Source: Mantamonas sphyraenae STR306 (lineage: Eukaryota; Protista; CRuMs). Taken from it: a stretch of 64,000 nt of DNA. Numbering within the stretch: position 1 is the first letter of the stretch; the number at the start of each line of letters is the position of its first letter. The translations under genes were made by a program, and so were the position numbers. The notes beneath the pieces are model-generated. The model was not told where the DNA came from. It was given only the letters and a program-made list of their open reading frames with translations, and ran no database searches. The stretch lies in the NCBI GenBank assembly GCA_026936335.1, contig JAPMXV010000075.1, positions 124,001-188,000 of the forward strand, in the 5' to 3' direction. Positions 4,020-63,570 of the stretch are shown piece after piece.

Positions 4020-4073
4020 GGAGGAGGAAGAAGCATGGGGAACTGAAAACAATGAAGGGGAAAAGGGGACACT

Positions 4074-5267: not shown

Positions 5268-5364
5268 GGAGATGGGGGGGTTGGTTGGGCAGGGCAGGGG
5301 CGCAGGTGCATCCAAGGCACTGCATGAATCTTTGCTGAAACGATTGGGGTACTGTCTTGCAAGC

Positions 5365-6665
5365 ATGTCCTCGACAACGGAGTACTTTTGGGGGGCTGTG
5401 GATGCATCGGGTAGGTGGAGGGGTTGGAGCGTGGGTGGGATTTCCGAGGTGGGACGGGACGACGGCTCCGCGCACAGACCAGGGATGACAAGCAAAAGTT
5501 CGGTTCATATCTTAGTGTGGCACACGATGCACACACGGTGTCGAGAACCCTTTTTTAAATATTGATCTGAGGTTTTGGATGCGTGGAGGCGGAGCGAGAG
5601 GGTTTTCGGAGGGTGCCGGAAAAGCCCGGGGGGGGGGGGGAGGGGAAAGGTGGCGGCTGACACGTGGGCGGTGTGCGTGTGGCACTGTTGGACGGGCTTG
5701 CCTGCAGTGAACTGGTGTGAGGGAGACTATGGGGTGTCGCCGTACGTGGCGGAGTTTTGGAACACGGTAAGGGGCGGAAGATGGAAGGAGGTGCATGTGG
5801 GTGGGACGACTCTCTGGCGAGCGCAAAACGGACGCTGACACGGGGAGGCATGCGACAGGTGTCGTCGTTGTTTATGGCACTGCTGGGATTTGTGGGGCTG
5901 ATCAACTCGTTGGGGAGTGGATTGCCAGGAAGGTTCCATTGGGGCTATGTGTCGCTGATCACGGTGGGCGTGGGCAGTGCGATGTTCCACGGTTCGCTTC
6001 GACACGCGGGCCAGGCGGCTGACGAGCTGAGCATGGTGGTGGGCATTTGTATGTTTCTGTGGCAGACGCTGGACGAGCGGCATGTGGAGCGGGCCAAGCT
6101 GATGAGCAGCAACCAGCTGCTGGCTGTGTTTACCACGGTGTTTGTGGCGCTGGCCACGCTGTGGGCGTACACGTGGGAGAAGCCGATCTTGTTCCAGGCT
6201 TCGTTTGTGTCTATGGAACTGCTGGAGATATACTTGCTGACCAAGTGGTACAACCGTGCCAAGGAGCTGGGCACGTGGCCGGAGGCGCGGCGCGTGTTTC
6301 GCCTGTCGCAGTGGTGCGAGGGCATTGCGGTGGTGTGTTGGCTCACGGACCACGCGCTTTGTAGATTCAAGCTGGGCATCGAGTTTCACGCGCTGTGGCA
6401 CACGTTTATGGCGGTGTGGGCGTATGCGCGCATTGTGCTGCTGTCGATGATCAAGAGCACAGAGGCGTCGACCACGTCGGAGCTTGCGCTGGACGAGTCG
6501 TTGCTGCCCATGCGATGGTGGCACGGCGTGTTGCCCATCAACGCACGTGTGTCGCACAAGTACAAGCAAAAGGTGAAGCGGCAACAGGCACGCGACGCGC
6601 GCAGTGGAAACAACCCTGCCGCACGCAATGCCGAGCTGTTGCAAATGGAAACCAAGCGGGCGTAG
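5365..6665 (+). CDS. ACER3: Alkaline ceramidase (ACER3/YPC1-like); join(5365..5410,5708..5766,5859..6665), ~303 aa
   Basis: Spliced N-terminus reads YFWGAVDASVNWCEGDYGVSPYVAEFWNTVSS. CREST-family motifs GSAMFH, DELSM and FHALWH. Both introns are GT..GCTGAC..CAG and preserve frame. Confidence 0.9.
5477..5574 (+). ncRNA. Candidate intronic box C/D snoRNA in ceramidase intron 1
   Basis: Short terminal stem GACC/GGTT; C-like box GGGATGA (5482-5488); D box CTGA (5567-5570); internal GTTCGGTTCAT complementary to the LSU rRNA segment ATGAACCGAAC as I recall it. It forms an AT-rich island in the longest intron predicted in the window. Confidence 0.35.
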
Positions 6666-19771: not shown

Positions 19772-20005
19772 GCTCAAATGCACCGGCAGACCTGCGCTTT
19801 TTTCCTTTGCCTCTTTGTCCGCCGTCCTCTCACCGCCATCCGACTGTGGGTCACCTCGCCGTGTTGTTCTCAACACACACCACAATCCACCTGCTCCAAC
19901 AATCCAGTGGACCTGTGTCCCAACCATGACTTGTGCGCAGCATTGGGCACGACAAACAACATCGTCTCGGAGGCCACCACCCAGCGTCGTCCTCGCCTTG
20001 CCCTC

Positions 20006-20009
<4 letters not shown>

Positions 20010-20044
<35 letters not shown>
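20010..20044 (+). repeat. (CA)n microsatellite in the RhoGEF/GPCR divergent spacer
   Basis: About 17 consecutive CA units. Confidence 0.95.
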
Positions 20045-20045
<1 letters not shown>

Positions 20046-20079
20046 ACGTCACCGCGAACAGGAGCAATAGCGTGCAGCA

Positions 20080-20994
20080 ATGCCTGTTCCCGACGCAGTC
20101 CTCTTTGAAGAGAACGACACAAACACCCTGAAGCAGCTGACGCTCGTCTCGTCGGGCCTCTCGCTCGTCGGAGGTGTGGTGGTTCTCATCTCGGCTGCAC
20201 TGGTGCCACATCTGCGCCAGTTTCCAGGCAGGCTCGTGCTGTGCCTAACCATCGGAGACACGCTGGCAGCGGCCTCGTACCTGATTTCAGATTCCTCCCA
20301 AGACGACGGCGCGTTTTCCTGCCTTTTCTCCGCCTCGCTGATGTCTTTTTCACAGTCCCTCTCTGTGCTGTACACGGCGTGCATTGCACACAGCGTACTA
20401 CGCATGGCAGCCGCCGACTCGAATGACGACCGCTCCCTGGAGCCGCTGTACCACTTTGTGTGCACCACGCTCCCACTGATCAGCATCATAGTGCTCGCGT
20501 CCACACGTCAGTTTGGCCCCACTGCAGTGTGGTGCTGGATCCCGGTCAACCATACCCTGGCACGCATGGTCAGCTTTTACGGCCCGTTGTTTCTTGCGTT
20601 TCTGTATATCCTCGTCACATACGGGCGAGTGCTCAAACTGATCAACACCACCCTGAGGCAACTGCTAACAGAAGCACCCACGGCCGAGTCGCGCAGCCAC
20701 TACGAGCGCTCCAAGTTTGAAATCACTCGGCAGATCAGCGTGTACGTCGGCGTCTTCATCCTCTGCTGGCTCCCGGCCGTCATCAACCGAGTCCAGAACT
20801 GGATCGCGCCTGCAAGCCCCGTGTATGCCCTCTTTGCCTTGCAGGCCTCCATGTCTCCTGCCCAGGCCTTTGTCAATGCCCTGGCGTACGCCATGAACTC
20901 GCGGTTACGCGCAGAGTGGAGGGCCATCTTGCTCGGCGCCTGGAAAAGGCTCCGGCGCTTTGGGTCCACCTACGACCGCCTGGACACGATATGA
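20080..20994 (+). CDS. 7TM GPCR, cAMP-receptor/GCR1-like (304 aa)
   Basis: Seven hydrophobic segments; motifs RLVLCLTIGD, FGPTAVWCWI, FYGPL, YVGVFILCWLPAVINR, QAFVNALAYAMN. An in-frame TAG just upstream fixes the start. Confidence 0.88.
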   Translation: MPVPDAVLFEENDTNTLKQLTLVSSGLSLVGGVVVLISAALVPHLRQFPGRLVLCLTIGDTLAAASYLISDSSQDDGAFSCLFSASLMSFSQSLSVLYTACIAHSVLRMAAADSNDDRSLEPLYHFVCTTLPLISIIVLASTRQFGPTAVWCWIPVNHTLARMVSFYGPLFLAFLYILVTYGRVLKLINTTLRQLLTEAPTAESRSHYERSKFEITRQISVYVGVFILCWLPAVINRVQNWIAPASPVYALFALQASMSPAQAFVNALAYAMNSRLRAEWRAILLGAWKRLRRFGSTYDRLDTI

Positions 20995-25898: not shown

Positions 25899-26278
25899 AG
25901 GTGAACGAGAGAGGCTTCTTGGGACAATGTCCCGTTCCAACTCTGTCCGTGAATGAATCCTTTTCCCAGATCCGTCACCACGAGGCATCCCACCGGTGGT
26001 GAAGGGGAAATAATCCGCGTCCACAATGAGTTTTCAAGGACCTCTGGGATAGTGTGCAGGGTGCATCAGCTCGCTGACAAATCAGCGCGACTCAGCGCGG
26101 CTCGGGAGCGCTGCGCTGAATCTTTTTTCCCTTGCCAGCGATCGACCCACGGGCGGCTGCAACGTGACGCAGAACACTGCTGTAGGAAACTCACACAACA
26201 CAAGATCCTTCTCTCGTGTGCCATCGGAATGAAGATCTTGCCTTGCGCGCGACGGGCAATCGAAACGAGGTTTTTCCG

Positions 26279-29200
26279 ATGCGAGCCCTCCTTGTCGCCT
26301 TTCTTTCTTTCCTGGTGCTCCTTTCCCTGGCATCTCTGGGTGCTGGCCAGAGAGATGCAACTCTGTGCTTCATGCAAGCTCTCGGCGTGGCCCCTGCCGA
26401 TCCCCTCACCTGTCATTGCACCTGGCGAGGGGTGACGTGCGACGAGTGGAATGCTACGCAAACTTCCTGCCCGTCAACCACCTCTGTACACTCCATCAAG
26501 CTGGACTCTATCGCTCCAACACCTCCGTACACTCCCAAAATCGACGGGGATTGCCTTCAGAACCTGACTTCCCTGAAAACCCTCGAGCTGCGCAACATGA
26601 GCATCCATGGCGGCCTCTCGAAAATACCCACGTTCTTGAGAACGCTCTCCATGCCATTCAACGCCATCCAGAACATTTCCGCGTGGTACAAAGTTTTTTT
26701 TTATGAAAGTAACTACGTTGATCTTGGGAGCATCGAAACTTTAGACCTGAGCCACAACATCCTTGAGCTGGAATTTGGCGGGGATGCGGAGAAGATCCTC
26801 TTTGAAAAGCTTGTCAATCTCAAAGAGATTAACTTGTCTCACAACCGCCTGAAGGGGTCTCTTCGTCGCTTTGGATTGCCTTATTTCGAGGAAGAAATGC
26901 TCTCATATCTGAGGGTTGTGGACTTTTCGAGCAATCAGCTGGTTGGTCCGCTGCCGCCCCTGCGCTCGTTCGGCAAAGTCCGCGTTCTAAACGTCTCTCA
27001 CAACCAAATCGACGAGCCGATTACGCGCGACCATCTCTCCTCCACCCTTCGTACCCTGGACGCCTCCCACAACGCCATTCCCGGCGCGCTTCCGCAAGAC
27101 CCGTCCCTGTGGGCATCTATGCACATCGTGGACCTGAGCAACAACAAGCTGATTGGAAGCATACCCTCGCTCCTCCCAGCTTCGTCTCTGCAGTCACTCA
27201 AGTTGGCCAGCAACACACTGTCGGGCGCGCTGCCGCCGTCGCTTTGGCAGCAGCCACAACTGCTCGTCCTCGACCTCACTGACAACCTCATCTCTGGACG
27301 TATCGATGGCCATTCGTCGTCGCCAACGTGGAATAGCACTGCTCTGCAGTGGCTGTCTCTGGCACGCAATCAACTGAACGACACGCTGCCGCCGCAGCTC
27401 GGGAGTCTCACAAATCTCACCTATCTGGGCCTCTCTGAAAACCAGATAGAGGGCAAAATCATACCCGAGGTTGTTCAACTGATGCACATGCACCGTCTCA
27501 GCCACCTGGACGCCTTTGCCAACCTCTTGTCGGGCACGGTACCCAGGGCACTCTTTGCCGTCGCCCCCAGCGCAGATCCCCGGGCCAAGCGTATCATCAA
27601 CCTCTCTCGCAATGAGCTTTTGGACACCCAGATTCTGGAAACACTCCTGCATGGCGACGCTCTCAACGTGGAGTTGCATTTCAGCGGAAACAACAACGAG
27701 ACGACCCAGATTCCAGACACGCCCAAGTGGAGCCGCTTCGCCTGCTTGAATCTCCACCTGACTGCCATGTCGCTTGATGGACCGGTGCCGTCGTCGTTTG
27801 TGCGTGCAAACCTGAGCTACCTGAATCTCGCCTTCAACAAGCTTTCGGGTGACTTTCCCGCGGCGCAGCTGAAGGGACAGAACCCCGCCTGCCAACTAAA
27901 GGTGCTCTCATTGGGCAACCAGCAGGGCATCCGGGACCATCTCCGTCTGCCGCTCGGCGAGGCCTTGCATGCGTTGGCTCGTGTCGCACACCTGCGTGAG
28001 GTGTACTTGGACCACATGAATCTCACGTACGATGCTCCCTGCAGCAATAACAGCGCTGCAAGGTTCCTGCAAGAGCTGGAAGTGTTGTCACTTGCATATT
28101 CGACTGTGAACGACAATTGCCCATTCGACGTCGAACTGTTTGGTTTGCCGCGCATCCGCTCCATCGACCTGCAAGGAACCCTCTTTAGACTGCACATCAA
28201 CGAAAGCATAGCGTTTAGTCCTAGCCTGCGTGTCATCAACGTCGGCGGGAAACGAATGTCCGCAGTGATTCCGTGGCACAAGCTTCCGCCCCAGTTGGAA
28301 TATCTGGCCATTGAGGGCCCCGAAGACATCGCTGTGGACGCAAGCATCTCTGCGGAAGCGTCTCGCAACGTGACGTTGCGCTCGTTGCACACTGTGCTGC
28401 TTCCACGCACCCGATTTGGCCACACCTTGAGAAACTTGTGCCCGGTTCTCCCCGCGATCCAGCGGTTCAGCATTCAAGACTCGGTCGAGGTGGATTTCCT
28501 GCCAGATTGTCTGGTCAGCTGGCGCGGCCTCGTTCAGTTCATCGTACGCAACTGCGGCCTTGGGGGCGACGATCTCCCCGACTTTTCAACGATGTCCAAC
28601 TTGACTGAGTTGGACCTGAGCAACAACAGGATCAGTTCGTCCACGTGGACAGTTCAGCGATCGCTGGTGCGGTGGTATGGGCCGACCCCTGTTTCGCCGC
28701 CTCTCAAGGTGCTGAACCTGCAGAACAATCTCATCCGCGGAGCCGCTGCCAACCTGCTCGTGGCGCGGAACTGGGGTGACCTCGACCTGTCTTTCAATAG
28801 TCTCAATGGGGAAATCCAACCTTCCGCAGACCTGCGCATGTCGTCCTTTACCACGATCCGACTCGAGAACAACGAAAACGTGACAGGAGCGCTTTCCGAG
28901 GAGCTGCTCACCATCCCATCGTTATCGTACGTCAACGTGGCCAACACGAGCGCCACGCTGTCGGACTTTACTCAGTGCACGGTGGAGGCGTGGGAACCCA
29001 TTGTAACGCATGGCGAGCAAAAGCTGCGTTGCAAGGATCTCACCCTGTCCTGCAACCGCCGTGTGCAGATTCGAGGCTCCTGGCCAAACGCAAAGTTTTG
29101 CGAGTGCCTGGAAACCACAGGGTTTGGGAGCAATTTGACAACGTGCTTGGATTGTCCCACGTGGCATCCGGCCAGCCGGTGTTCCGGCGGCATGATCACC

Positions 29201-30739
29201 AGCAGCCGATACGACGACAGCACCGAGCGCATCCGAGTGTGTCCCGTGCCCTTTGCGTGTGAGTCTGTGTCACAGGTGGACGTTGTGGGCAACAACAGCG
29301 ATCCCCACTGCGCTCTGGAGTACACGGGCCGTTTGTGCTCCGAATGCCGGCTGAGTGTGCCTCACCACGGCAAACAAGTGCAGGTGTACCGCCACGGCAA
29401 GAAGTGCGAGCCGTGCCAAGATTCCGACGTGTGGCAACCCATCACCCTGCTGTGCGTGGCATTTGTCGCCCTGCTTGCGTTTACGTTTCACTCGCGCTTC
29501 CACCACTACGACAGCCAGAAGGGCACCAAAAAGATCCTCATCTTCTGGCTTCAAATTATGGCTGTACTCGACTCGTCCATTTTCTCCGTGGATGTCCAGT
29601 ATGAGGCCCTGCGCTCCCAGGCACATGGCGCAGGGGAAGCATTTGTGGAAGACTCGTTTAAGACCGACTCCATCAGGCGAGAGCTGTCGCAGTTGGTCAA
29701 ACTATCTTTCAGCAGTGTGCTGTGTGCGTTTGATCATCCGGAAACGCATGGGGTGCCGTGGAAGGAGCCGTGGATGTTTGAGTTTTGGCTGCGTTTGGGT
29801 CTGCCGCTGGGGATCATCACTCTGCTGTGCGTGGCCATCTTCAGCTTGGCGCATGTGGGCGGACAGCACCTTTTTGGCACGCGCAGGCACCTGCGGCGGA
29901 TGACCATGGGCATTGCCGTCTACTTTCTTGTGCAATTTGGGTACGCGGGCATGACGCTGGTCTCCCTCCAGGTGATGAACTGCACGAACCCAGATGGCTA
30001 CATGAACGCCCTACCGTTTGTAAAGTGCGATCTCGAGCCCGTCAAGGTGCTTGTCGGTGTCGCGTGGGTTGCCTTTCTGCTTGTGGGGCTTGGGCTGCCG
30101 GCCCTCGTGTTCTGGCGTGTGCGACGCATCCGCTGGCAAGAGGCGTCGCGTCCGGCCGATGAGCAGTTTGTCAAGGAGAATCTGATGGCGTGGGGCCATC
30201 TGTACTGCAGCTACCGCGACGAGGCGTGGTGGTACGAATCGGTTTTGATGCTGCGCCGACTGGTGGTGACCATGATTGTCTCGTTGACCCCGTACGACAA
30301 CCTGCCGCTGCTGTTTTCTCTGCTGATGTTGAGCATGCTTGCGTTTATTTCCATCCACGCGCATGTGCAGCCGTTCAAGCGGCGCCAGGACAACCTGCTC
30401 GAAGACGTTTCCCTCAACCTGCTGCTCGTCCTCACCGTGATTGGCACGCTTGTCACAGTGCTGCCGTACAGAGACTTTGGCGACGCTCTGTTGGCCCTGT
30501 TTGGCGTCGAGACCATCGGCTCCCTGCTCTTTGTGATCGTCGCCGCGATGAAGCTGCTGCGTGAAATTTCCCACTCGGTGGACTTTCGCGCGATGATGGC
30601 TTGGGCCAAAGGGATGTTGAGCAGGGGCGAGAGACAGCAGTCGTCACGCAAGTCGAAGAGCGGACGATCTCGTCTGGTGCCGCAGGGCCGGCGGAGGGGC
30701 GGCAAGGACAGGGAGATTCCGCTGCTGGAGGATTTTTGA
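26279..30739 (+). CDS. LRR-ectodomain multipass (about 7 TM) receptor-like protein (~1486 aa)
   Basis: Signal peptide MRALLVAFLSFLVLLSLA; plant-type LRRNT CTWRGVTC; many LxLSxNxLxGxIP repeats; Cys-rich juxtamembrane CALEYTGRLCSEC; TM domain with WGHLYCSYRDEAWWYESVLMLRRL. Confidence 0.88.
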   Translation: MRALLVAFLSFLVLLSLASLGAGQRDATLCFMQALGVAPADPLTCHCTWRGVTCDEWNATQTSCPSTTSVHSIKLDSIAPTPPYTPKIDGDCLQNLTSLKTLELRNMSIHGGLSKIPTFLRTLSMPFNAIQNISAWYKVFFYESNYVDLGSIETLDLSHNILELEFGGDAEKILFEKLVNLKEINLSHNRLKGSLRRFGLPYFEEEMLSYLRVVDFSSNQLVGPLPPLRSFGKVRVLNVSHNQIDEPITRDHLSSTLRTLDASHNAIPGALPQDPSLWASMHIVDLSNNKLIGSIPSLLPASSLQSLKLASNTLSGALPPSLWQQPQLLVLDLTDNLISGRIDGHSSSPTWNSTALQWLSLARNQLNDTLPPQLGSLTNLTYLGLSENQIEGKIIPEVVQLMHMHRLSHLDAFANLLSGTVPRALFAVAPSADPRAKRIINLSRNELLDTQILETLLHGDALNVELHFSGNNNETTQIPDTPKWSRFACLNLHLTAMSLDGPVPSSFVRANLSYLNLAFNKLSGDFPAAQLKGQNPACQLKVLSLGNQQGIRDHLRLPLGEALHALARVAHLREVYLDHMNLTYDAPCSNNSAARFLQELEVLSLAYSTVNDNCPFDVELFGLPRIRSIDLQGTLFRLHINESIAFSPSLRVINVGGKRMSAVIPWHKLPPQLEYLAIEGPEDIAVDASISAEASRNVTLRSLHTVLLPRTRFGHTLRNLCPVLPAIQRFSIQDSVEVDFLPDCLVSWRGLVQFIVRNCGLGGDDLPDFSTMSNLTELDLSNNRISSSTWTVQRSLVRWYGPTPVSPPLKVLNLQNNLIRGAAANLLVARNWGDLDLSFNSLNGEIQPSADLRMSSFTTIRLENNENVTGALSEELLTIPSLSYVNVANTSATLSDFTQCTVEAWEPIVTHGEQKLRCKDLTLSCNRRVQIRGSWPNAKFCECLETTGFGSNLTTCLDCPTWHPASRCSGGMITSSRYDDSTERIRVCPVPFACESVSQVDVVGNNSDPHCALEYTGRLCSECRLSVPHHGKQVQVYRHGKKCEPCQDSDVWQPITLLCVAFVALLAFTFHSRFHHYDSQKGTKKILIFWLQIMAVLDSSIFSVDVQYEALRSQAHGAGEAFVEDSFKTDSIRRELSQLVKLSFSSVLCAFDHPETHGVPWKEPWMFEFWLRLGLPLGIITLLCVAIFSLAHVGGQHLFGTRRHLRRMTMGIAVYFLVQFGYAGMTLVSLQVMNCTNPDGYMNALPFVKCDLEPVKVLVGVAWVAFLLVGLGLPALVFWRVRRIRWQEASRPADEQFVKENLMAWGHLYCSYRDEAWWYESVLMLRRLVVTMIVSLTPYDNLPLLFSLLMLSMLAFISIHAHVQPFKRRQDNLLEDVSLNLLLVLTVIGTLVTVLPYRDFGDALLALFGVETIGSLLFVIVAAMKLLREISHSVDFRAMMAWAKGMLSRGERQQSSRKSKSGRSRLVPQGRRRGGKDREIPLLEDF

Positions 30740-50513: not shown

Positions 50514-51178
50514 TGTTCCCCCCACTGCGTGTGTGTTTCGTGTTGTTGTGTCACACCCGTCGCATTGCACACCCCATCCATCAACCACCACCAAGAACGC
50601 AGATCTGAAACGGGCAGTGGCGGTGTAGTTGCCTTTGTTCACTCGATTGGCAATGTGCAAGCAAAGGGGGGTCGACACCACTCCTTTCTTCCTCGGACGC
50701 ATCCGTTTCCTTCCCTGCTGGTGGCACTGATGGGCAAAGACAGGACGGTGTGTGTGTCACTCTGGATATTGGAACAACGTCATGGAGGTGTGCGTGGAGG
50801 GTTGTAAAGTGGGGAGGAAATGTGGCTCTTTCATGTGTGGTGGTGGTGGTGGATGGATGGAGGAAGAGGGTCAGAAGCAGGAGGCACGATGGAACGCCGT
50901 CCTACTGTAGGTTGTGGCGTAGTGGGGGGTGAATGTAGGTGGAAGATCGGGTGTGTGTGTTGTCGACGCGGAATGTGAAGGCGGCGAAGAAGAGGCTGAG
51001 CGCTCCTTGTCCTCTATGCGCGAGTGCAACAACGCATATTGCATACAGACAGTTTTGAACAGTCATCAGGTAGGGAGGGGCGGGGGTATCGGGGACTTGT
51101 GCCCGTGTATAGATGGGATAGAGAGAGAGTCACGGAGGAATCAGGAGAGGCTGACAATCATGGGATATCGCAGGAAAT

Positions 51179-53229
51179 ATGGGCTTAAACGTACATCAGT
51201 GGTTGGAATTGTTGCAGAGCGGGGACCATGGGCGGATTGTGGAAGCTTTGGAGGATCAGGGAACGGTGAGTAGGCGGAAAGAAATCGGGAGGGCGTTTTG
51301 GGTGAGCGTGACGTTGATCGTCGCACCAGAAGAAGGGAAGGAGGGATGGGAGTAGGGTGGATGTGATGGTGAGTACGCAGGGTGGAACGTGTGTTGACAC
51401 GGCACACACAGAAATTGGACCTTGCACGTGGGGACCTGGGAGACAAAGAAGCAGCGGCACTCGCGCGGGCACTGGCTCAGAACAGCAGCTTGCAGACCCT
51501 GGACCTCAACAACAACACCATCGGGGCAGAAGGCGCCGCAGCACTGGGGCAGGCACTAAGTGAGAACAGCGGCTTGCAGACACTGATTCTCTGGGACAAC
51601 GGCCTCGGGGACGAAGGAGCAGCAGCGCTTGGGCAGGGACTGATTGATAACACCGCCTTGCAGACGCTGGACCTTGAGAACAACAGCATCGGGGACAAAG
51701 GCGCAAGAGCAATGGGGCAGGCACTGAGTAGGAACAGCTGCTTGCAGACACTGAACCTGGGAATCAACTGCATCGGGCCAGAAGGCGCAGCAGCACTGAC
51801 GCAGGCACTGTGTGAGAACACCACCTTGCAGACGCTGGACCTCGGAAACAACAGCATTGGGGCAGAAGGCGCAGCAGCGCTGACGCCGGCACTGAGTGAG
51901 AACACCGGCTTGCAGACTCTGTACCTTAGTAGCAACAGCATCGGCGACAAAGGAGCAGCCGCACTGGCGCAGGGACTGAGGGAGAACCAGAACTTGCAGG
52001 CACTGAGCCTCTTCTACAACAGCGTCGGAGCAGAAGGAGCGGCAGCACTGGGGCAGGCTCTGAGTATGAACAGCAGCTTGCAGACACTGAACCTCGGCTG
52101 GAACAGTTTCGGGGCGGAAGGCGCAGCAGCACTGGCGCAGGCACTGAGGGAGAACCAGAGCTTGCACACACTCATCCTCAGCTCGTGCGGCACTGGTGCA
52201 GAGGGAGCAGCAGCACTGGGGCAGGCGCTGAGGGAGAACAACAGTTTGCAGACTCTGAATTTTGGAAACAACAGTATCGGTGACGAAGGGGCCGCAGCAC
52301 TGGGACAGGCTCTGAGTAGGAACAGCAGCTTGCGGACACTGTACCTCAGCCTTAACAGCATCGAGGACGAAGGAGCAGCAGCACTGGGACAGGCACTGAG
52401 TGAGAACAGCTGCTTGCAGAAAATAGACCTCGCAAACAACAGCATCGAGGCAGAAGGCGCAGTAGCACTGGCGCAGGGTCTGAGCAAGAACAGCAGCTTG
52501 CAGACACTGAACCTCAGTACCAACACCATCAGGGCAGAAGGAGCAAAAGCGCTGGCGCAGGCACTGGGTGAGAACAGCACCTTGCAGATGCTGAGTCTCA
52601 GCTTCAATCCTACCGGGGACGAAGGAGCAGTAGCACTGGCTCAGGCATTGAGTGAGAGCAACAGCTTGCAGACACTTGACCTCGGGAACACCAGCATCAG
52701 GACAGAAGGTGCAGCAGCGCTTGCTCAGGCGATGGAGGGCAATCGCTCCTGCTGGAAGATTGAAGGCGTTCGCAATGACGCGTTGCAGTCGCTGTTGGAG
52801 AGGAACATGGAGAATCACGTGGAGTTTGTGGAGTGTGGGGATGTGGAGACGATGAGAGAGTTGTGGGAATGGGGTGTGCCTGTGGACACGTTTGCAGGGG
52901 ATGAGGGGGAGGAGACTGCGCTGGAGAGGGCTGTGAAGGGTGGGGATGAGACGATTGTGGATGTGTTGCGGGCGTGGGGTGCGACGCCGAGGATGGAAAC
53001 GGTGGAGATTGTGAGGAAGGGAGGGTGGAGGAAGGCGTGGCATTGGATTGGATGGGGTGGGCAGGTGGATGAGGCGATGGAGGTGGCGCTGGTGATGAAT
53101 GGGGAGGAGAGGGAGGCGATGTTTGAATGTGGAGGGATGGAGGCGTATGAACCGACTGCACAGTGGATGACACTGCCGGATGAGGTGATGGAGAGGGTGA
53201 TTGGGTGGATGGGGAGGGGTGGGTGGTGA
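51179..53229 (+). CDS. LRR-ankyrin-F-box-like paralogue A, ~16 RI-type LRRs; join(51179..51265,51412..53229), ~634 aa
   Basis: Exon 1 MGLNVHQWLELLQSGDH; phase-0 intron; 28-aa LRRs; ankyrin-like ETALERAVKGGDETIVDVLRAWGA; ends WMTLPDEVMERVIGWMG. Confidence 0.88.
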
Positions 53230-55316
53230 TGGCGTCGCGGAATGAAGAAGTTGGTTGAGTGTGTGGTTGTGAGGGAAATGGGCAAGCAATGAAAACCAGC
53301 ATGAGGAGTAAAAGGCGGTGCTACACACCCGTGTTTGTTGTTCACCACCTGTACAGACAGGACCATCGGGGTCCCAGTAATTACGCTCCAAGCACAACCG
53401 GCGAGTCCTCTTGCTTGGTAGTGTCGTCACTGCACATGCGGAGAAGGTTCCTCATTTGGACACCCCACACACCATGCGCGTTCACTCGTGTTCCATAGCG
53501 GGATTGTCCTCTTCTGAGTCTGCCCTCCACCGTCCTCCGTCCCCGTTGTTGGGTGAGGGAGGGTCGTTGGGATGGGATGGGGGGTTCACCCACCCTCCAC
53601 CATACCCCTTCCACGTACCCAGTCCCATCTTCTTCGTTGTCATTGTCGTTGTGGTTGTGGTTGTGATTGCAACTTGGCGCGTTGCACGTCGACGTGGCCA
53701 CCTGCTTCCTGATGCTGCTACGGTTGTCCCCCTTTCATCCTCCAACCAGCGCCTCCATGCTGCGTCCGCTTCTGGCTTGCCAAAGCCCATGTCCGATGGA
53801 CACTGGAAGGGATCCCACAGAACATGTCCCGGGGGGGAGGGGGGGTTCCTGGAGACGCGCCCACACACTCGCACCCTCCTCACGTCCACCACGCAAACAC
53901 CCTGTGTTTCTCTTCATGGGTGGATGCACACGTTCTGCGGTTTGTCCATCCCTTTGTTCTCCCTCTGTGGCGACTTCTCTCTCCTTGGATCGGGGCGAGC
54001 AGCGCCGTTTTCACGCGCGTACTTTCCACGTGTCACATACACGCCTGTGCGTGCGTGGCTTCCCTTTGGCTTCGGACTGGGTTGACCTAGCCTTGTCCCA
54101 ACTGGTCAAGAGGTTGTTCTCGCGTGCGTGCGAGTTGTGGCTGCAGCCACAGAGGCGACTTGAGGGTGCGTCTGAACCGCGAGAACAAGCTGGAGCGCAC
54201 GGGCCGCCAAAAGCGTGACGTGTGCCACGGAGGACATCCGAGATACGGCTGGGGATGATGCCATGGGCCCCTCAGACGTGGAATTGGTGCATCTGTCCGG
54301 TTCCAAGGTGTGCTAAGGCGCCCATGGTGTTGAACGTGGCCTCGGTTGCCGGGCGTGTCGACGGGCGCCTTGGTCGCCGTCTGCCAGAATCCCATCACAG
54401 AGGCAGGGAGGACATTCGAACCGACTTTGACGACAGTACGCCACCGCACGTGTGTTTGTGCATGTGTTGGTGCAACGTCATTCTCACTACTGTTCCACGA
54501 TGTTGGAGGGGGGCGGGAACTCCGGTGGCTGAAAACGCGCACCTCGGCGGGTGGGTGTGTGCATGTGTCCCCAGGACCACAACTTCAGTGAGGGTACACA
54601 CACATACACGGGTCTCCCAATGGACGAAGCTGGTGATGTGTGTTCCCATCTGCGACCATTTCAAGTGCGATGTGAAACGCCTCGCTTTTCGGACCCACCA
54701 GTGGATGATTGAGAACGTGTGGGTGGCAGAGGCGCCACCAGTGCGGTCGCGACGGATGAACGGGTCATGCCAGGCGAAGCTTTGGTCTCTGTTGAGTCTC
54801 ACGTGCAGCTCCGGGATTTTCCTGACTCGAAGAGGTGGAGAAAAAAGAACGCCGTTCACATTTTGGGAACGGATGATGGACCCCGAACATTATGAGTCAA
54901 CCCGAAGGTAGCAGCCAAAAGCGCAACTCAACGGAGGAGGAGGACCAACGTGTCAGAGAAGAATTTTCCTGCCGAGTCTATCACGTGTGTCATGGGTGAC
55001 ATGGTGGACATGGATGCACAGGAGAGAATTCAAGATTCCCGGAGGAGTGGGAGTTGGGAGTGTGCAGCGTACGGGGAGAGGATACCGGGCGGGAGAAACG
55101 GAGCGTGGCGGTGAAGGCGCCGAACGACGCAACGCATCTTGGAATTGGTGACATCGAACAGGAATCTCAGGGTAAGTGAGGTGGCTGGGTGGAGAACACA
55201 CGGCTGGTGGGCTGTTGAGGGGAGGAATGGAAGGGGGCGGTCGCTGTGGGAGGGAGAGTGGGCGGGTGGTGCCCACGACGCTCACAACGGAGAGCAGACA
55301 CAGATTGGGTACACAG

Positions 55317-56376
55317 ATGAATACCGATTGGAATGATCTGCTGAAGAACGGGGACCATGCACAGATTTGTAGTGCACTGGAGGCAGCGGGAGAGGTAGGC
55401 TGGGACCGGAACACAAGGAAGAGCGGGAAAGAAGTGGGTGAAGGGCAACAGTGGAGTGTGTGCTGACACGACACGTGGGCCACAGCGGCTGCGCATTAAT
55501 TGCATGTATCTAGGGGACGACGAGGCAGTAGCGCTTGCCAAGGCGCTGGGGAAGAACACCAGATTGCGGACACTCGACCTGGGCTTCAACAACATTGAGG
55601 ACGAAGGAGCAACAGCGCTGGGACAGGCACTGAGTGAGAACAGCAGCTTGCAGAGACTGGACCTCAGGGCAAACAGCATCGGGGCAGCAGGAGCAGGAGC
55701 AGTGGCGCACGGACTGAGTGCGAACCGCAGCTTGCAGACGCTGTACCTCTTCAGGAATTCGATCGGGGCAGCAGGAGCAGCAGCACTGGGGCAGGGTCTG
55801 AGTGAGAACAGCAGCTTGCAGACACTGCACCTCGGCTGGAACAACATCGGGGACAAAGGTGCAGCAGCACTTGCTCAGGCGATAAAGGGCAATCGGTCGT
55901 GCTGGAAGATCACCGGCGTTCGCAATGACGCGTTACAGTCGCTGTTGGAGAGGAACATGGAGAATCACGTGGAGTTTGTGGGGTGTGGGGATGTGGAGAC
56001 GATGAGAGAGTTGTGGGAGTGGGGTGTGCCTGTGGACACATTTGCGGGAGAGGGGGGGACGGAGACTGCGCTGGAGAGAGGGGTGAAGGGAGGGGACGAG
56101 GGGTTGGTTGAGGTGTTGCGGGGATGGGGTGCGAAGCCGATGATGGAAACGGTGGAGTTGGTGAGGAAGGAGGGGTGGAGGAAGGCGTGGCATTGGATTG
56201 GGTGGGGTGGACAGGTGGATGAGGCGATGGAGGTGGGGTTGGTGATGAACGGGGAGGAGAGGGAGGTGATGTTTGAGTGTGGAGGGATGGAGGCGTATGA
56301 ACCGACTGCACAGTGGATGACACTGCCAGACGAGGTGATGGAGAGGGTGATTGGGTGGGTGGGGAGGGGATGGTGA
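55317..56376 (+). CDS. LRR-ankyrin-F-box-like paralogue B, ~5 LRRs; join(55317..55394,55486..56376), ~322 aa
   Basis: Exon 1 MNTDWNDLLKNGDH; same intron position; same C-terminal module. Confidence 0.86.
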
Positions 56377-56399
56377 GTGGGGAGGGGAGGTGCGGAGAG

Positions 56400-56990
56400 G
56401 CGAATGTAGGTGGACAGTTTTTGAACAGTGATATGTGTGTGTGTGTGAGGTGGACGCGGGATGTGAAGGCGGCGACGAAGAGGCTGAGCGCTCCTTGTCC
56501 TCTATGCGCGGGTACAACAACGCATATTGCATACAGACAGTTTTGAACAGTCATCAGGTAGGGAGGGGCGGGGGCATCGGGGACTTGTGCCCGTGTATAG
56601 ATGGGATAGAGAGATAGTAACGAGAGGAATCAGGAGAGGCTGACAATCATGGGATACAGGAAATATGGGCTTAAACGTACATCAGTGGTTGGAATTGTTG
56701 CAGAGCGGGGACCATGGGCGGATTGTAGAAGCTTTGGAGGATCAGGGAACGGTGAGTTGGCGGAAAGAAATCGGGAGGGAGTTTTGGGTGAGCGTGACGT
56801 TGATCGTCGCACAGGGAAGGAGGGATGGGTGTAGGGTGGATGTGATGGTGTATACGCAAGATGGAACGTGTGTTGACACGGCACACACAGAAATTGGACC
56901 TTGCACGTGGGGACCTGGGAGGCAAAGAAGCGGTGGCACTTGCGCGGGCACTAGCTCAGAACAGCAGCTTGCAGACCCTGGACCTCGCAG
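56400..56990 (+). repeat. Recent duplicate of 50930-51510 (upstream region, exon 1, intron and first LRRs of paralogues A and C)
   Basis: Near-identical non-coding sequence, e.g. GAAGAGGCTGAGCGCTCCTTGTCCTCTATGCGCG..CATATTGCATACAGACAGTTTTGAACAGTCATCAGG in both places. Confidence 0.92.
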
Positions 56991-58789
56991 ACAACCCCAT
57001 CGGGGTAAAAGGCGCAACAGCACTTGGGAAGGCACTGAGGGAGAACAGCGGCTTGCAGACACTGGACCTCAGCCACAACAGCATCGGGGCAAAAGGCGCA
57101 GCAGCATTGGGGCAAGCACTGTGTGAGAACATCAGCCTGCAGACGCTGGTCCTCAAAAACAACAGCATCGGGAAAGAAGGAGCAGCAGCACTGGGGCAAG
57201 GACTGAGTGAGAACAGTACCTTGCAGACACTGAACCTCGGAAAAAACAGCCTCGGGGCAGAAGGCGCAGCAGCACTGGCAAAGGTACTGGGTGAGAGCAG
57301 TAGCTTGGAGACACTGAATCTCGACAGCAACAGGATCGGGGCAGAAGGAGCAGCAGCCCTGGGGCAGGCACTGAGGGAGAACCAGAGCTTGCAGACACTG
57401 GGTCTCACCAAGAACAGCATCGGGGCAGAAGGCGCAGCCGCGCTGGGGCAGGCACTGAGGGAGAACCAGAGCTTGCAGACACTGGGTCTCACCAAGAACA
57501 GCATCGGGGCAGAAGGCGCAGCCGCGCTGGGGCAGGCATTGAGTGAGAACAGCAGCTTGCAGAAACTGGGTATCAGCGACAACAGCATCGGGGCAGAAGG
57601 TGCAGGCGCGCTGGGGCAGGCACTGAGTGAGAACAGCAGCGTGCAGAATCTGGATATCAGCCGCAACGGCATCGGTGGAGAAGGAGCAAAAGCTCTGGCG
57701 CGGGCACTGAGTGAGAAAAACAGCTTGCAGTTTCTGGAGCTCTCTAGCAACAGGATCGGGGCAGACGGAGCAGCAGCACTGGCGCAGGCACTGGCTGAGA
57801 GCCGCAGCTTGCAGATACTGGACCTCGGCTGGAACAGCATCGGGACAGAAGGTGCAACCGCACTTGGGCAGGCACTGAGTGAGAACAACAGCTTGCATAC
57901 ACTGATCCTCAGCCGCAACAGCATCGGGGCAGAAGGAGCCGCAGCACTGGCGCAGGCACTGAGTGAGAACAGCAGCTTGCAGACACTGAACCTCAGTACC
58001 AACACCATCAAGGCAGAAGGAGCAGCAGCACTGGGGCAGGCACTTTGTGAGAACCAGAGCTTGCAGAGACTGAACCTCGGAAACAACAGCATCTTGGCAG
58101 AAGGAGCCGCAGCACTGGCCCAGGGACTGGGGAAGAGCAGCAGCTTGCAGACCCTGAACCTTAGTACCAACAGCATCAAGGCAGAAGGAGCAGCAGCACT
58201 GGGGCAGGCACTTTGTGAGAACCAGAGCTTGCAGACACTTTACATCAACTTCAACAGCATCGCGGACAAAGGAACAGCAGCACTGGCCTTGGCGATGGAA
58301 GTCAATCGGTCGTGCTGGAGGATCGATGTCGTTGGCAATGGAGCTTTGCGGTCGCTGCTGGAAAGGAACATGGAGAATCACGTGGAGTTTGTGGAGTGTG
58401 GGGATGTGGAGAAGATGAGAGAGTTGAGGGAGTGGGGTGTGCCTGTGGACACATTTGCGGGAGAGGGGGGGACGGAGACTGCGCTGGAGAGAGCTGTGAA
58501 GGGTGGGGATGAGGAGATTGTGGAAGTGTTGCGGGCATGGGGAGCGAAGCCGAGGATGAAAACGGTGGAGATGGTGAGGAAGGAAGGGTGGAGGAAGGCG
58601 TGGCATTGGATTGGATGGGGTGGGCAGGTGGATGAGGCGATGGAGGTGGCGTTGGTGATGAATGGGGAGGAGAGGGAGGCGATGTTTGAATGTGGTGGGA
58701 TGGAGGCGTATGAACCGACTGCACAGTGGATGACACTGCCGGATGAGGTGATGGAGAGGGTGATTGGGTGGGTGGGGAAAGATGTGTGA
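56665..58789 (+). CDS. LRR-ankyrin-F-box-like paralogue C, ~17 LRRs; join(56665..56751,56891..58789), ~661 aa
   Basis: Exon 1 translation identical to paralogue A; same intron position; same C-terminal module. Confidence 0.88.
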
Positions 58790-60393
58790 ATTGTTCCGTT
58801 CATTCAAGGCGGTGGTGTTTGGAGGAGGAGGGCAAGGGATTGGAGAGGCGTTGAAGAGTGGAATGAATGGAAGGTGATGTGGGGTGATGCGGCCAATGAG
58901 GGTGTGCAGTGTCGTTGGGTTGGAGTTTGGGCAGTCAAGGGATCGTGTGGGAGAAGGGAGTGACGGCATGGGTGACAATGGCGCTGATGGTGGGTTGCAC
59001 CTGCCTGGAGATGAGGTTGTGGCATGGTGATGGGAACGAGGGAGGCCAACACACAGCCGCTAACAGAGCCTCTGGTCGCTTTGACAGTCGTCTCTGGGTG
59101 TTCCTTCTCTGTGAAGTGGATACCATGGGACTGTCGCTGATGATGCATTGGCCTTTGGTGACACCGTGGCTGTATGGATGACACCAGCGAAGTAGAAACT
59201 CCGCCTGTGGGAGGATCAACGCACACAAAACCTGCCCTGTGTCGGCGCACAGCCCTCGTTGGATCCTAAGACCAAGCTTGTAGACGAGTCCACGGGAAAC
59301 ACACGCACAGACGCAGTTTCGTGTTTGGGGTGATTTTGGTGGAGAGCGGCTGGTTGTTGGCCATGTCGACAATGGTCGGAAAGTGGCGAAAAGTGGAATG
59401 AGGGTCATTGGGGTGTGGTTGATGTGTGGAGGGCAGAGACCGAGGCTGAGGGCATGGGACGGCCTGTGGTGCGAGCAGGGGGGCGGCAAAGGTGCGGGTA
59501 CTCGGCCACCGCCTGAAACCAGCTGCGTGAGTTTCTGCGACACTGCTCACGAATGCACAGCCTGACTGTGGTAAAAGTGTGCTTGGGAAGTGTGTGGGTG
59601 ACTACACACAGGTGCAAGAGGTGGGCGTGGTGATCGAGGGGGTGTGTGGTCCGTGGGAGGGCGGTTTGTGGCGCAGGAAGGCGGCGAGGTGCGGCTGGGC
59701 TGGCAAGGCGACAAGCAAAAACGACGCCACGACCACCACCAGGCACATTTTTCATCGAATTTGGGGAACTTGGCGCAGAGGTGGAATGGGAGGATGAGGC
59801 CTGTTGCGTGTGTGGGAGGAGGATGTGTCTGCGACAAAATCACCTCCGGGTGGCAAGGGGAGAGGTCATGGGGCCGCAGTGCAGCAAGGTGGGCGATGAC
59901 GCAGACTCAAGAGAAGGAAGCAGGTGGAGAGTCAGCAGTGTCATACGCAGCAGATGCCAGTGGGGTGGGAGAGCGTGCGCTTGTCAAAGCACAACAAACA
60001 CAACTGACAAAAGGAGATGGACGAACAAGGTGAGTTGACGACGTAGTGGGGTCGATGTGTTGTTTGCCATTGGTTGGTGGGTGTGTGTTGGGACAGCGTG
60101 CAACCAGCTCTTCCGTTTTGGCGTGAGGAAGGAGGCCGGTTGGCGCGTGAGAACCTGGTGGCGAGGATCGTCGTGCTGCCCCCCAACGCACCATAGCAGG
60201 CAACGCTTGGGGTGCACAGAGTACTTGGCCAGTGCAGCAGCAACATGCGCCGCAGCTAACAACCGGCACATGCTCACAGATTCAGACTCTGAAGGTATGG
60301 AGACCATGCAGAGGAGAAAGGGAGCTGGGCAGAGGGAAAGTTGGTGCACACACGCTCACAACGGGCAAAGCAGGCGAAGTGAACATCCTGAAA

Positions 60394-62138
60394 ATGGATG
60401 ATGATGACTGGGCGGCGTTGCTGCGGAGTGGGGATCATGAACGGATTTGTCGGGCACTGGAGGCAGAGGGAGAGGTGGGTTGTGACTGGGACGCGTGGCC
60501 GTGTTGCACGTCAAGAAGCGGATAAAGGGAAACTATGGAGTGTGTGTACTGACACGTGGAACACAGTGTTTGTGTATTCGTAGCCAGTTTCTGGGTGACA
60601 ATGAGGCAGCCGCACTGGCGCAGGCACTGTGTGGGAAGTGCAGCTTGCAGACACTGGACCTCAGTGACAACAGTATTGGGGACGAAGGAGCAGCAGCACT
60701 GGCGCAGGCACTGAGTGAGAACACCAGCTTGCAGACACTGAAGCTTGGTTCCGGCAGCATCGGGAACTTAGGAACAACGGCACTTGCGCAGGCACTGATT
60801 GAGAACAGCAGCTTGAAGACTCTGCAAATCAGCACCAACAGCATCGAGGACGAAGGAGCATCCGCACTGGGTCAGGCATTGTGTGAGAACAACAGCTTGC
60901 AGACTCTGGATCTCAGCCACAGCAGCATCGGTGGCAAAGGAGCGGCAGCAGTGTTCCAGGCCCTGAGTTTGAACAGCAGCTTGCAGACGCTGATCATCAG
61001 CTGGGATGGCATCGAGGCAGAAGGAGACGCAGCACTGGGGCAGGCTCTGAGTGAGAACAGCAGCTTGCTGACATTGGACCTCATCGACGACAGCATTGGG
61101 GACGATGGAGCAGCAGCACTGGCTCAGGGACTGAGTGCGAACAGCAGCTTGCAAACTCTATACGTCGGCCACAACTGCATCGGGGACGGAGGAGCAGCAG
61201 CACTGGCTCAGGGACTGAGTGAGAACACCAGCTTGCAGACACTGGACCTCATCAACAACTGCATCGGGGACGATGGAGCAGCAGCACTTGCTCGAGCATT
61301 GAGTACGAGCAGCAGCTTGCAAACACTATACCTCTGGAAAAACAGCATCGGGGACGATGGAGCAGCAGCACTGGGGCAGGCACTGAGTGAGAACAGCAGC
61401 TTGCAGGCTCTGGACCTCAACAGCAACAGTATCGGGGCAGAAGGAGCAGTAGCACTGGGGCAGGCACTGAGTGAGAACAGTAGCTTGCAGACTGTGGAAC
61501 TCAGCTACAACAAAATCGGGGTCGGAGGAGCAATAGCACTGGCGCAGGCACTCAGTGAGAACAGGAGCTTGCAGAAACTGCACCTCAGAGACAACAGCAT
61601 TGGTGGAGAAGGAGCAGCGGCACTGGCGGAGGCGATGCGTGGCAATCGGTCGTGCTGGAGCATCGTTTATGACCACGATCGGGCTTATCAGTCGTTGTTG
61701 GAGAGAAATAGGAAACATCACGCAGAGTTTGTGGAGTGTGGGGATGCGGTGAGGATGGCTGAATTGAGGAAGTGGGGTGTGCCTGTGGACACCTTTGCAG
61801 GGGAGAGTGGGAAGGAAACTGCGCTGGAGCGAGCAGTGAAGCGAGGGGACGAGAGGATTGTGGAGGTGTTGCGAGCATGGGGTGCGACGCCGAGGACGAA
61901 AACGGTGGAGATGGTGAGGGAGGAAGGGTGGAGGAAGGCGTGGCATTGGATTGGGTGGAGAGGACAGGTGGATGAGGCGATGGAGGTGGCATTGGTGATG
62001 AATGCGGAGGAGAGGGAGGTGATGTTTGAGTGTGGAGGGATGGAGGAGTATGTGGAGGAAGGAGGGTGGGAAGGGTGGGTGACACTGCCAGATGAGGTGA
62101 TGGAGAGGGTGATTGGGTGGGTCGTGGTGGCTGGGTGA
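60394..62138 (+). CDS. LRR-ankyrin-F-box-like paralogue D, ~13 LRRs; join(60394..60474,60567..62138), ~550 aa
   Basis: Exon 1 MDDDDWAALLRSGDH; same intron position; ends WVTLPDEVMERVIGWVV. Confidence 0.86.
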
Positions 62139-62213: not shown

Positions 62214-63570
62214 ATGGACTGGAATCACCTGCTGGATTCCCCCTCCGACCCATTGTCTATTGAAGAGGCACTGGCACACGCTGGGAAAGTACGCTGAATC
62301 GCATTCCCCCGTTGCTGCTGCGCAAGGACCTTGCCTTACTCGCCTCCACCCCACCCCCGCTCTCAAGTCGCTCTCACTGCGGCAATGGCAGCTCACAGAC
62401 ACCCAAATCGCCTCTTTGGCATCATTTGGCATTGCCGGAAACACCACCCTCCAAGTCCTGGACCTCACACGGAGTGGAGTAGGCCCTCACGGCGCAACCG
62501 CCCTTGCCAAGGCCCTCACCGCCAACACAACCGTCCACACGCTAAAGTTGAACAGCAATGTCATCGAAAGCAAAGGGTGCATTGCAATCATCGAGTCGTT
62601 GAACCACAACAACTCTCTGCTCTCCCTCAGTCTCCTGAAAACCAACCTCGATGACGAGTCGTTCCGTCTGGATGCAAACAACACGCTGAACGAGCTGAAC
62701 GTCGCCTTCAACACCGTTGGCGACGCCTTTGCCGCCTCGTTGGCCAGTTGACTTTCTGAAAACACTTCTCTGTGCATCTTGACCCTCACCCACAACCAAA
62801 TCAGCTGCCAAGGCGCAGAGGCCCTCGCTGCAGCGCTCACACACAACGTCAGGCTGACAGACCTTTCACTTGCCCACAACCACATCGAACGCAAAGGCGC
62901 TGTTGCCTTGGCCACTGCTCTGTTGGCAAATAGCACCCTGCAGTCTCTGAATCTCTACCACAACAGCATCGATGACGACGGAGCCATCGCCATCGCCACA
63001 GCCCTGCATTCAAACAGCACTCTGCAGATTCTTGATTTGGCCAAGAATCCCATCAACGACTTGGGGCAAACGGAATTGACGACTGCTTTGACCAACAACA
63101 CGACTTGCTTGCGCATCGACTGCTGCAAGAGGGTGTTCAACTTGACACAAGCGAGGAAGTTCACAACAGCTGCACAGCGTGGCGATATTGCCACCATGGG
63201 CGAGTTGAGAGAGTGGGGTGTCGCTGTGGACGCTCGGGCAGGCGAGCACGGGCAAACCGCCTTGCAGCTGGCCATGGAAGCCAGACAGGATGCTGTGGTT
63301 GCACAACTGAGGCGTTGGGGGGCACAGGCGACGTATTCATTCACAAAGTCGATCGGGGGTTCAAACTGGGAATGGCGGGAACCGTGGCATTGGGTGTTGG
63401 GCACCGTGGTGCAAGACACCGCATTGGAAGTCGTCCTGGCCATGAACGCTGAGGAGCGGGATGTGATGTTTGAAGCAGGAGGGATGGAAGGGTATGTTCC
63501 CACGGCCCTGTGGAGCACCCTTCCAGACGAGGTGATGGAACGTGTGGCAACGTGGATCGGCCATCTGTGA
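62214..63570 (+). pseudogene. Divergent LRR-ankyrin-F-box-like paralogue E, ~9 LRRs, with in-frame TGA at 62749-62751; join(62214..62288,62368..63570)
   Basis: Exon 1 MDWNHLLDS; the two ORFs are in the same frame, separated only by TGA (ASLAS*LSENTSL); clear ankyrin GQTALQLAMEARQDAVVAQLRRWGA; ends WSTLPDEVMERVATWIG. Confidence 0.7.

Follow-up and report, generated by a model that had tools for sequence, protein, structure and literature searches.

Organisation of the LRR gene cluster

The stretch of DNA analysed here, called the window, comprises 64,000 nucleotides from the protist Mantamonas sphyraenae STR306 (assembly GCA_026936335.1, contig JAPMXV010000075.1, positions 124,001 to 188,000), and our subject is a group of five neighbouring genes of this intron-poor eukaryote, all on the + strand, that encode leucine-rich repeat (LRR) proteins (Table 1). 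We read the locus as a tandem cluster in which genes A to D have open frames and gene E is a probable pseudogene, and this reading forms part of a wider account to which we give rather better than an even chance. The proteins have constant ends and a middle of variable length. At the N-terminus a conserved peptide of 26-29 residues would apparently be encoded by a mini-exon of its own, the middle part consists of 5-17 LRR units, each exactly 28 residues long, and the C-terminal end is a conserved module of ~160 residues with probable ankyrin-like repeats, the invariant LPDEVMERV tail coming last. The products would be cytosolic LRR proteins of the ribonuclease inhibitor (RI) type.

The reading frames of A to D are open over 0.9-1.9 kb (615 codons in A) and keep a perfect LRR register. 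Upstream of the main open reading frame (ORF), at a distance of 40-116 nt, a peptide of 26-29 codons is kept in all five paralogues, with the invariant residues W, LL, GDH, I, ALE and G and with a GT at its exact end. The conservation of this peptide up to the GT points to a mini-exon at the 5' end and to introns of no more than 40-116 nt in a genome that is otherwise poor in introns, and we infer a two-exon model for the cluster genes. AG acceptors of compatible phase are present in B, C and D. In A the AG lies one base early and thus out of phase, and a GTG replaces the ATG of C (interval 51373-51384); because it has neither that ATG nor a phase-0 acceptor, A may be defective at its 5' end. 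The exons were matched to databases one by one, and the joins between them are predicted from the sequence.

Gene E has the same layout as A to D. Its frame is interrupted by a TGA at 62749-62751, and one of its units, at 62617-62685, has only 23 aa; it is probably a pseudogene, or else contains a sequence error. The pieces of E were queried separately, and both match Pfam LRR_6.

Table 1. Features of the LRR gene cluster, in positions of the window
Feature	Position	Strand	Translated range	Basis and parts
A 5' flank	50951..51405	+		93.6% identical to C 5' flank (56439-56884)
A putative 5' mini-exon, 29 codons	51179..51265	+		peptide conservation, inferred exon; GTGAGT donor at end; 100% identical to C mini-exon
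A main ORF	51382..53229	+	51382-53229	translation, Pfam; LRR units A0-A15 51406-52749, C-terminal module 52750-53229
B putative 5' mini-exon, 26 codons	55317..55394	+		peptide conservation, inferred exon; GT donor at 55395
B exon 2	55435..56376	+	55438-56376	phase-0 acceptor at 55435; LRR units B0-B4 55480-55899, C-terminal module 55900-56376
C putative 5' mini-exon, 29 codons	56665..56751	+		peptide conservation, inferred exon
C exon 2	56861..58789	+	56861-58789	translation, Pfam, AF2; LRR units C0-C16 56885-58312, C-terminal module 58313-58789
One-unit tandem copy in C	57359..57538	+		57359-57454 identical to 57443-57538 (96-nt run); C6/C7 94% identical
Non-adjacent unit copy in C	58006..58235	+		58006-58067 identical to 58174-58235 (62 nt); C13/C15 96% identical, C14 between them 76-77%
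D putative 5' mini-exon, 27 codons	60394..60474	+		peptide conservation, inferred exon
D exon 2	60519..62138	+	60495-62138	translation, Pfam; LRR units D0-D12 60561-61652, C-terminal module 61653-62138
E, diverged, probable pseudogene	62214..63570	+		exon-1-like peptide near 62214, LRR units from 62365, C-terminal module to 63570

The LRR units and their predicted fold

Tandem Repeats Finder reported four arrays with a period of 84 bp (51446-52730, 55553-55871, 56936-58286 and 60606-61633; scores 328-1307). The original prediction had spoken of about 50 units, and the count is 51 in exact 84-bp register (16 in A, 5 in B, 17 in C and 13 in D), each of exactly 28 aa and without a single indel. 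All four proteins match Pfam LRR_6 far above its cut-off (E = 1e-24 to 1e-77; 84-249 bits compared to 23.4) and also match the LRR domains of ribonuclease inhibitor and of nucleotide-binding LRR receptors (NLRs) in the PDB. With repeats of this length, within the 28-29 residues of the class, A to D belong to the RI-type (RNI-like, Pfam LRR_6) proteins.

The LRR part of C, modelled with AlphaFold2 (AF2), has a predicted local distance difference test (pLDDT) score above 90. Each unit is modelled with a single strand at columns 3-5, in some units reaching column 7, and a single helix at columns 12-25. Searched with Foldseek, the model finds complexes of RI with RNases as its top matches, with a template modelling (TM) score of 0.80-0.85. 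The predicted fold is an RI-like horseshoe, lined on its inside by a parallel beta-sheet and on its outside by helices. Since L4 and L6 of the unit face the core, columns 5 and 7 would point to the concave surface and column 8 would open the ascending loop. In RI and other LRR complexes the concave face is the ligand-binding face, and RI contacts RNases through the strand and ascending-loop side, which is also the side on which the variable codons of A to D (5, 7 and 8, see below) are predicted to lie. The proposal that the x positions of the LxxLxLxxN motif form a ligand-binding beta-sheet thus agrees with the models as far as the placement of codons 5, 7 and 8 on the strand and ascending loop is concerned, while their role in ligand binding comes from general knowledge of LRR complexes.

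The resemblance to RI extends to the 28-residue repeat, to the LxxLxLxxN strand followed by a helix and to the superposition of the horseshoes. The proteins differ from RI in that their units are far more alike and do not alternate between A and B types of 28 and 29 residues, and in that they add the conserved N-terminal peptide and the ankyrin-like C-terminal module. No evidence was found that links the A to D proteins to RNases.

Shared DNA ancestry of the units

Pairwise identity among the units averages 0.71 in nucleotides and 0.62 in amino acids. For the 25 framework codons alone pairwise identity is 0.79 (0.85 to their consensus), and for the three variable codons it is 0.45. Describing the framework as close to constant in DNA, as was originally done, overstates this likeness: of the two framework strings put forward, the 24-mer is exact in 2 units and present with at most 2 mismatches in 19, and the 33-mer is exact in none and present with at most 3 mismatches in 20.

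The choice among synonymous codons is nearly fixed by position within the unit. Leu1 is TTG (41/42), Leu4 CTG (36) and Leu6 CTC (31); Glu14 is GAA (28/29) where Glu25 is GAG (33/33), Ser24 is AGT (25/26) where Ser28 is AGC (32/33), and Gly12 is GGG where Gly15 is GGA. Codon bias was considered as the source of the framework identity and rejected, as these codons are position-specific whereas the background bias of the window is weak. The units of E, which serve as a non-homogenised control, are 48% identical to one another in nucleotides and 38% in amino acids and use mixed codons. Position-specific synonymous codons, taken together with the contrast to E, show that the units of A to D share a recent DNA ancestry and have more in common than a protein motif. 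On our reading they go back to a single 84-bp unit, whose amplification came only a little before the genes were duplicated. The proportion of synonymous differences (pS) among units, 0.315, is comparable to that between the C-terminal module of D and those of the other paralogues (0.28-0.33) and about twice that between the modules of A and C (0.15).

Turnover of units within and between arrays

Genes A and C are 94% identical in their 5' flank and unit 0 and 92-93% identical in their C-terminal module. In the matrix of A units against C units the diagonal is limited to units 0-1 and 13, and the best collinear path through the two arrays reaches only 76% identity with a framework pS of 0.27 (compared to 0.15 in the C-terminal module and a 6% difference in the 5' flank). 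The fact that the interiors are not collinear although the flanks are 93-94% identical indicates that the arrays of A and C have been reshuffled relative to their flanks. There are two histories that fit: units were exchanged after gene duplication, or the flanks were converted later, and gene conversion is required in both.

The number of units also differs from one paralogue to the next. The tree of the units resembles a star, its internal branches making up only 20% of its length, and within this genome the units group neither by paralogue nor by position. Identical runs of at least 45 nt in register are three in all: a one-unit tandem copy and a non-adjacent copy, both in C (Table 1), and a run of 45 nt at the A12/13-C12/13 junction. 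Identity within arrays is not above identity between arrays, which weighs against ongoing homogenisation. Unit turnover is therefore supported, little of it is recent, and ongoing homogenisation is weak. After the amplification, units have been gained, lost, copied and exchanged, leaving the arrays non-collinear. Of the concerted evolution that had been proposed for the units, the shared DNA ancestry, the reshuffled arrays and the two recent copy tracts in C are borne out; the scarcity of long identical runs and the equal identity within and between arrays speak against it as a continuing process.

Positions that vary

Columns 5, 7 and 8 have amino-acid entropies of 2.7, 2.8 and 3.4 bits, and most of the remaining columns do not exceed ~1 bit. 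All of the four-residue strings listed in the original prediction (DLNN, ILWD, DLEN, NLGI, YLSS, SLFY, NLGW, VLKN, GLTK, YLWK and HLRD) were found, at columns 5-8. The broader statement that the x positions of LxxLxLxxN differ in nearly every repeat is right for x5, x7 and x8 and wrong for x2 and x3, which are conserved as Q (36/43) and T (33/43). Likewise, aromatic and charged residues are modestly enriched at the variable positions (13% compared to a background of 8%, and 26% compared to 19%), while small polar residues dominate with 48%. The alphabet of columns 5, 7 and 8 consists mainly of D/N/Y and S/G, with a modest enrichment of aromatic and acidic residues. An even spread of variability across the unit, which would have spoken against the prediction, is not seen, since a model with separate rates for codons 5, 7 and 8 outperforms a single omega, the ratio of nonsynonymous to synonymous rates (dN/dS), with twice the gain in log-likelihood (lnL) equal to 95 at 2 degrees of freedom (lnL -2210.8 to -2163.1, a gain of 47.7).

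Tests for selection at codons 5, 7 and 8

The question put was whether the x positions are under DIVERSIFYING selection. The tree of the units was obtained with IQ-TREE under GY94+F3X4 (omega 0.62; transition/transversion ratio kappa 1.35-1.47), and our own GY94 test of the fixed effects likelihood (FEL) type was applied on that tree. With one synonymous rate (alpha) for the whole unit, omega at codons 5, 7 and 8 jointly was 1.88 (p=1.2e-6), and the shared-alpha estimates were 1.96-2.81 when the tree was replaced by a star or by one built without the three codons. Taken column by column under shared alpha, the nonsynonymous rate (beta) was 2.6 at column 8 (p=1.5e-6), 1.65 at column 7 (p=0.026) and 1.45 at column 5 (p=0.08). 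A model-free check gave a diversity of 0.58 at codon positions 1-2 of the three codons compared to 0.325 at the 4-fold degenerate sites of the framework (Mann-Whitney p=0.002). How alike two units are at the variable codons bears no relation to how alike their frameworks are (r=0.05), and omega of the framework is 0.39. These results show that the fold-building residues of the unit are under purifying selection and that divergence at codons 5, 7 and 8 has proceeded at roughly double the synonymous rate found elsewhere in the unit.

The process most likely to have produced this pattern would be diversification of a predicted protein-binding surface upon a constant scaffold, and unit turnover would supply new combinations of such surfaces. 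We regard this account as a whole, a cluster with shared unit ancestry, turnover and a diversifying surface, as moderately probable. Several observations weigh against it. When codons 5, 7 and 8 are given their own synonymous rate, omega falls to 0.79, and to 0.44-0.46 on the alternative trees, as synonymous change is itself raised at these codons (alpha 2.3-9.7 compared to 0.9-2.3, a factor of 2.5-6, p=0.011 to 7e-7). The FEL-type test with site-specific alpha found no site with beta significantly above alpha. Columns 5 and 7, with an entropy of 2.7 bits and mainly D/N/Y and S/G as residues, come nowhere near free variation, and the recent unit copies C6/C7, C13/C15 and A13/C13 share their residues at 5, 7 and 8. 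That the variable codons are decoupled from the framework is accounted for, with no appeal to selection, by a star tree together with saturation. All codon tests assume a single tree, an assumption that recombination among units violates, and the comparison is one of paralogues from a single genome. Finally, the gene models of the cluster are predicted from sequence, and A seems to have no usable start or acceptor.

Because their own synonymous rate is also high, codons 5, 7 and 8 are marked by a deeper divergence of the whole codon. There are two readings that fit this. In the first, which is the model originally proposed with hitch-hiking of linked synonymous sites added to it, selection maintains diversity at these codons within a homogenised or constrained framework; in the second, some other cause keeps synonymous divergence low in the framework. 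Measured against the local dS, codons 5, 7 and 8 show no significant excess of dN, which positive selection in the strict sense would require. The diversifying selection that had been suggested for them is thus favoured by the estimates with shared dS (omega 1.9-2.8) and disfavoured by those with local dS (omega 0.44-0.79, no FEL site); as the two give opposite answers, the outcome is ambiguous when judged by whether dN/dS lies at or below 1.

The C-terminal module and domain searches

The ~160-residue module that follows each array is 73-90% identical among A to D, and its omega of 0.24-0.51 shows that it is under functional constraint. The LPDEVMERV motif is invariant and lies 8-12 residues before the stop codon. 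An F-box reading of this tail was considered and rejected, as an F-box takes ~45 residues starting with LPxE, so that the motif lies too near the stop, and no Pfam F-box match appears even at E up to 10. The Pfam profiles Ank_2, Ank_4 and Ank_3 match the module only at E 0.09-0.25, under the cut-off. A profile built from five C-terminal modules and searched against 1.84 billion representatives matched multi-repeat proteins at profile positions ~30-87 (best E = 6.5e-28), which we would read as generic ANK-repeat proteins, and returned no full-length relative of the module. A word search with residues 480-642 of C, covering the module, gave zero matches, and two metagenome scans for related loci, one with protein patterns and one with the exact DNA pattern of the LRR framework, found nothing. 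The structure models of the module are poor (pLDDT below 50 in the full model, 44 alone).

No NACHT, NB-ARC or other nucleotide-binding oligomerization domain (NOD) was found in A to D, where Pfam reports LRR families only, or in the ORFs of the spacers. A NACHT domain hidden in the spacers was considered and ruled out, as the ORFs between the genes contain no Pfam domain; the space upstream of A and C is merely 0.3-0.7 kb. The family is an orphan combination of an LRR_6 array, an ankyrin-like module and a unique tail.

Comparison with known repeat systems

The nearest LRR sequences, at ~50% identity, are those of NLRC3-like NACHT-LRR proteins from corals such as Montipora and Acropora, vertebrate NLRC3 and many unannotated ENA contigs. 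Many of these have 28-aa units with a homogeneous framework and the same variable columns 5, 7 and 8 (also 10 and 13). In one single-exon NACHT-LRR gene, L002, whose DNA was checked, the units are 82% identical, and the proportion of nonsynonymous differences (pN) at columns 5, 7 and 8 is 0.49 compared to a pS of 0.16 elsewhere. The cluster differs in that A to D have no NACHT or other NOD in or beside the genes and in that the NACHT-LRR units are more homogeneous, with self-identity at a shift of 28 residues of up to 0.90 compared to 0.61-0.70 here (best 280 aa). A bacterial RI-type LRR protein encoded on L001 (ENA ERZ21869517 contig_22) has near-identical 28-aa units that vary at columns 3, 5, 7, 8 and 25. 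It is set apart from A to D by its bacterial context (IF-2, NusA, a DDE transposase and an adjacent U-box+LRR gene), by another N-terminal region and by the lack of an ankyrin-like tail. Since NACHT-LRR and bacterial LRR proteins vary at the same columns, the pattern of variable columns is a recurrent property of this repeat class, of which the cluster is a moderate example, weaker than either of these cases. On the bacterial contig, the RI-type LRR gene adjoins the DDE transposase and the U-box+LRR_6 gene (3001-6102 and 8504-9102), which looks like an eukaryote-like effector pair.

The regime proposed for the cluster had been likened to that of the fungal HNWD repeats, in which units are exchanged within and between paralogues, repeat numbers differ and variability lies at ligand-face codons (PMC1805685, PMC4986451). 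The WD40, ANK and TPR repeats of HNWD proteins and other fungal NLRs have ~85% up to 100% unit identity, high internal conservation being taken as >85% aa identity over at least 100 residues (PMC4986451, PMC1805685), and FEL on HNWD repeats identified four positively selected codons (PMC1805685). LRR repeats were not found among fungal NLRs in the survey (PMC4986451). The units of A to D, in contrast, are 62% identical in amino acids, have zero FEL sites, are of the LRR type and are joined to no NOD domain, so that the analogy to HNWD fails both in degree (62% compared to ~85-100%) and in architecture, there being no NACHT domain. Plant NLRs and receptor-like LRR proteins resemble the cluster in that exposed residues around the LxL core vary upon a conserved scaffold, and intergenic exchange among tandem paralogues has been described for plant LRRs (e.g. 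PMC6771003, PMC8226289). They differ in being of the 23-24-residue type, in not being internally homogenised and in being joined to NB-ARC or transmembrane/kinase modules. The LRRs of zebrafish NLRs have been judged not especially variable (PMC4852459).

The evolutionary regime itself is of a known kind. If the diversification proposed here is true, a regime in which the scaffold is homogenised, units are shuffled and ligand-face codons evolve fast, documented for the WD40, ANK and TPR repeats of fungal NLRs, extends to RI-type LRRs, here in a protein without a NOD and in a lineage without sampled relatives. A description of the same three variable columns on the homogeneous 28-residue units of many NACHT-LRR proteins and at least one bacterial LRR protein was not found in the literature searched for this repeat class.

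Alternative explanations

An ordinary LRR pattern is a serious possibility, if in our assessment not the probable one. Here a single burst of amplification was followed by birth-and-death divergence, with the scaffold purified and the exposed positions 5, 7 and 8 relaxed, with neither positive selection nor continuing concerted evolution, and with the likeness of the A and C flanks due to later gene conversion of the flanks only. The star-like unit tree, the identity within arrays not exceeding that between them, the mere three long identical runs, the omega at or below 1 with local dS and the restricted alphabet of columns 5 and 7 are all in line with this, as is the variation of the same columns in unrelated RI-type arrays, which is expected of positions left unconstrained by the fold. 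However, neutral replacement diversity should not exceed 4-fold diversity, and the opposite was observed in the model-free check; the 4-fold sites are far from saturated despite the weak background codon bias; omega with shared dS is well above 1; and the C13/C15 copy and the C6/C7 duplication indicate that events at the level of units are still going on.

A stronger claim can also be made, namely that the cluster is a germline family of recognition proteins without a NOD, in an opisthokont-like protist, with constant ends, LRR units shuffled among tandem paralogues and concave-face codons driven apart by selection. We consider this unlikely. If true, the family would be an independent LRR counterpart, outside animals, plants and Dikarya, both of the HNWD repeats of fungi and of the cassette logic seen in the lamprey variable lymphocyte receptor (VLR).

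An assembly artefact, in which units were mis-ordered or collapsed to give an apparent non-collinearity, would be conceivable as arrays of 84-bp units are hard for short-read assembly; it is very improbable, because unit differences of 15-30% suffice to anchor reads, four frames are open over 0.9-1.9 kb in perfect register, and the caps and flanks are consistent between paralogues. Least credible of all is that the variable codons were made by targeted mutation, either fungal-type repeat-induced point mutation (RIP) or adenine-directed retroelement mutagenesis: the consensus codons GAC, AGC and AAC at the variable columns, with C mostly kept at the third position, superficially recall AAC-centred mutagenesis, but changes extend beyond adenines, the host is a eukaryote, the cluster holds no reverse transcriptase or template repeat (nor any Pfam domain in its spacer ORFs), and a kappa of only ~1.4 shows no transition excess of the RIP type, for which reason RIP-like mutation was rejected.

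Surroundings of the cluster in the window

The window has a GC content of ~58% and contains other long, uninterrupted ORFs, among them a TIG/ephrin-receptor-like protein of 4279 aa, a RhoGEF of 2975 aa, a polycystin channel, a Patched/SSD protein and MSH6, the last being at best 40-46% identical to sequences from early-diverging fungi and unicellular opisthokonts. The DNA is not human, and a trypanosomatid origin, which ORFs of such length without introns might suggest, was rejected on account of this affinity of MSH6 and of what seem to be small GT-AG introns. LRRs of other types occur at 26216-30736 and 6826-8355, one of the LRR_4/LRR_8 type fused to a TRP-like channel region and one in a 510-aa ORF on the minus strand. 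Two long ORFs run antisense across the LRR arrays (51556-53430, -, 624 codons, and 56951-58978, -, 675 codons). They are most likely not genes but a consequence of the repeat composition, which is poor in stops. GC skew is strongly positive (0.3-0.38) at 1-6000 and 56000-62000, where it coincides with coding on the + strand. The RhoGEF ORF (11198-20122, -; DH-PH, WW, IQ) contains three long tandem arrays, of 87 bp x 11 (96% matches), 84 bp x 16 (97%) and a looser 30 bp x 65 (75%), and the near-perfect 87-bp and 84-bp arrays surpass the LRR units of A to D by far in homogeneity.

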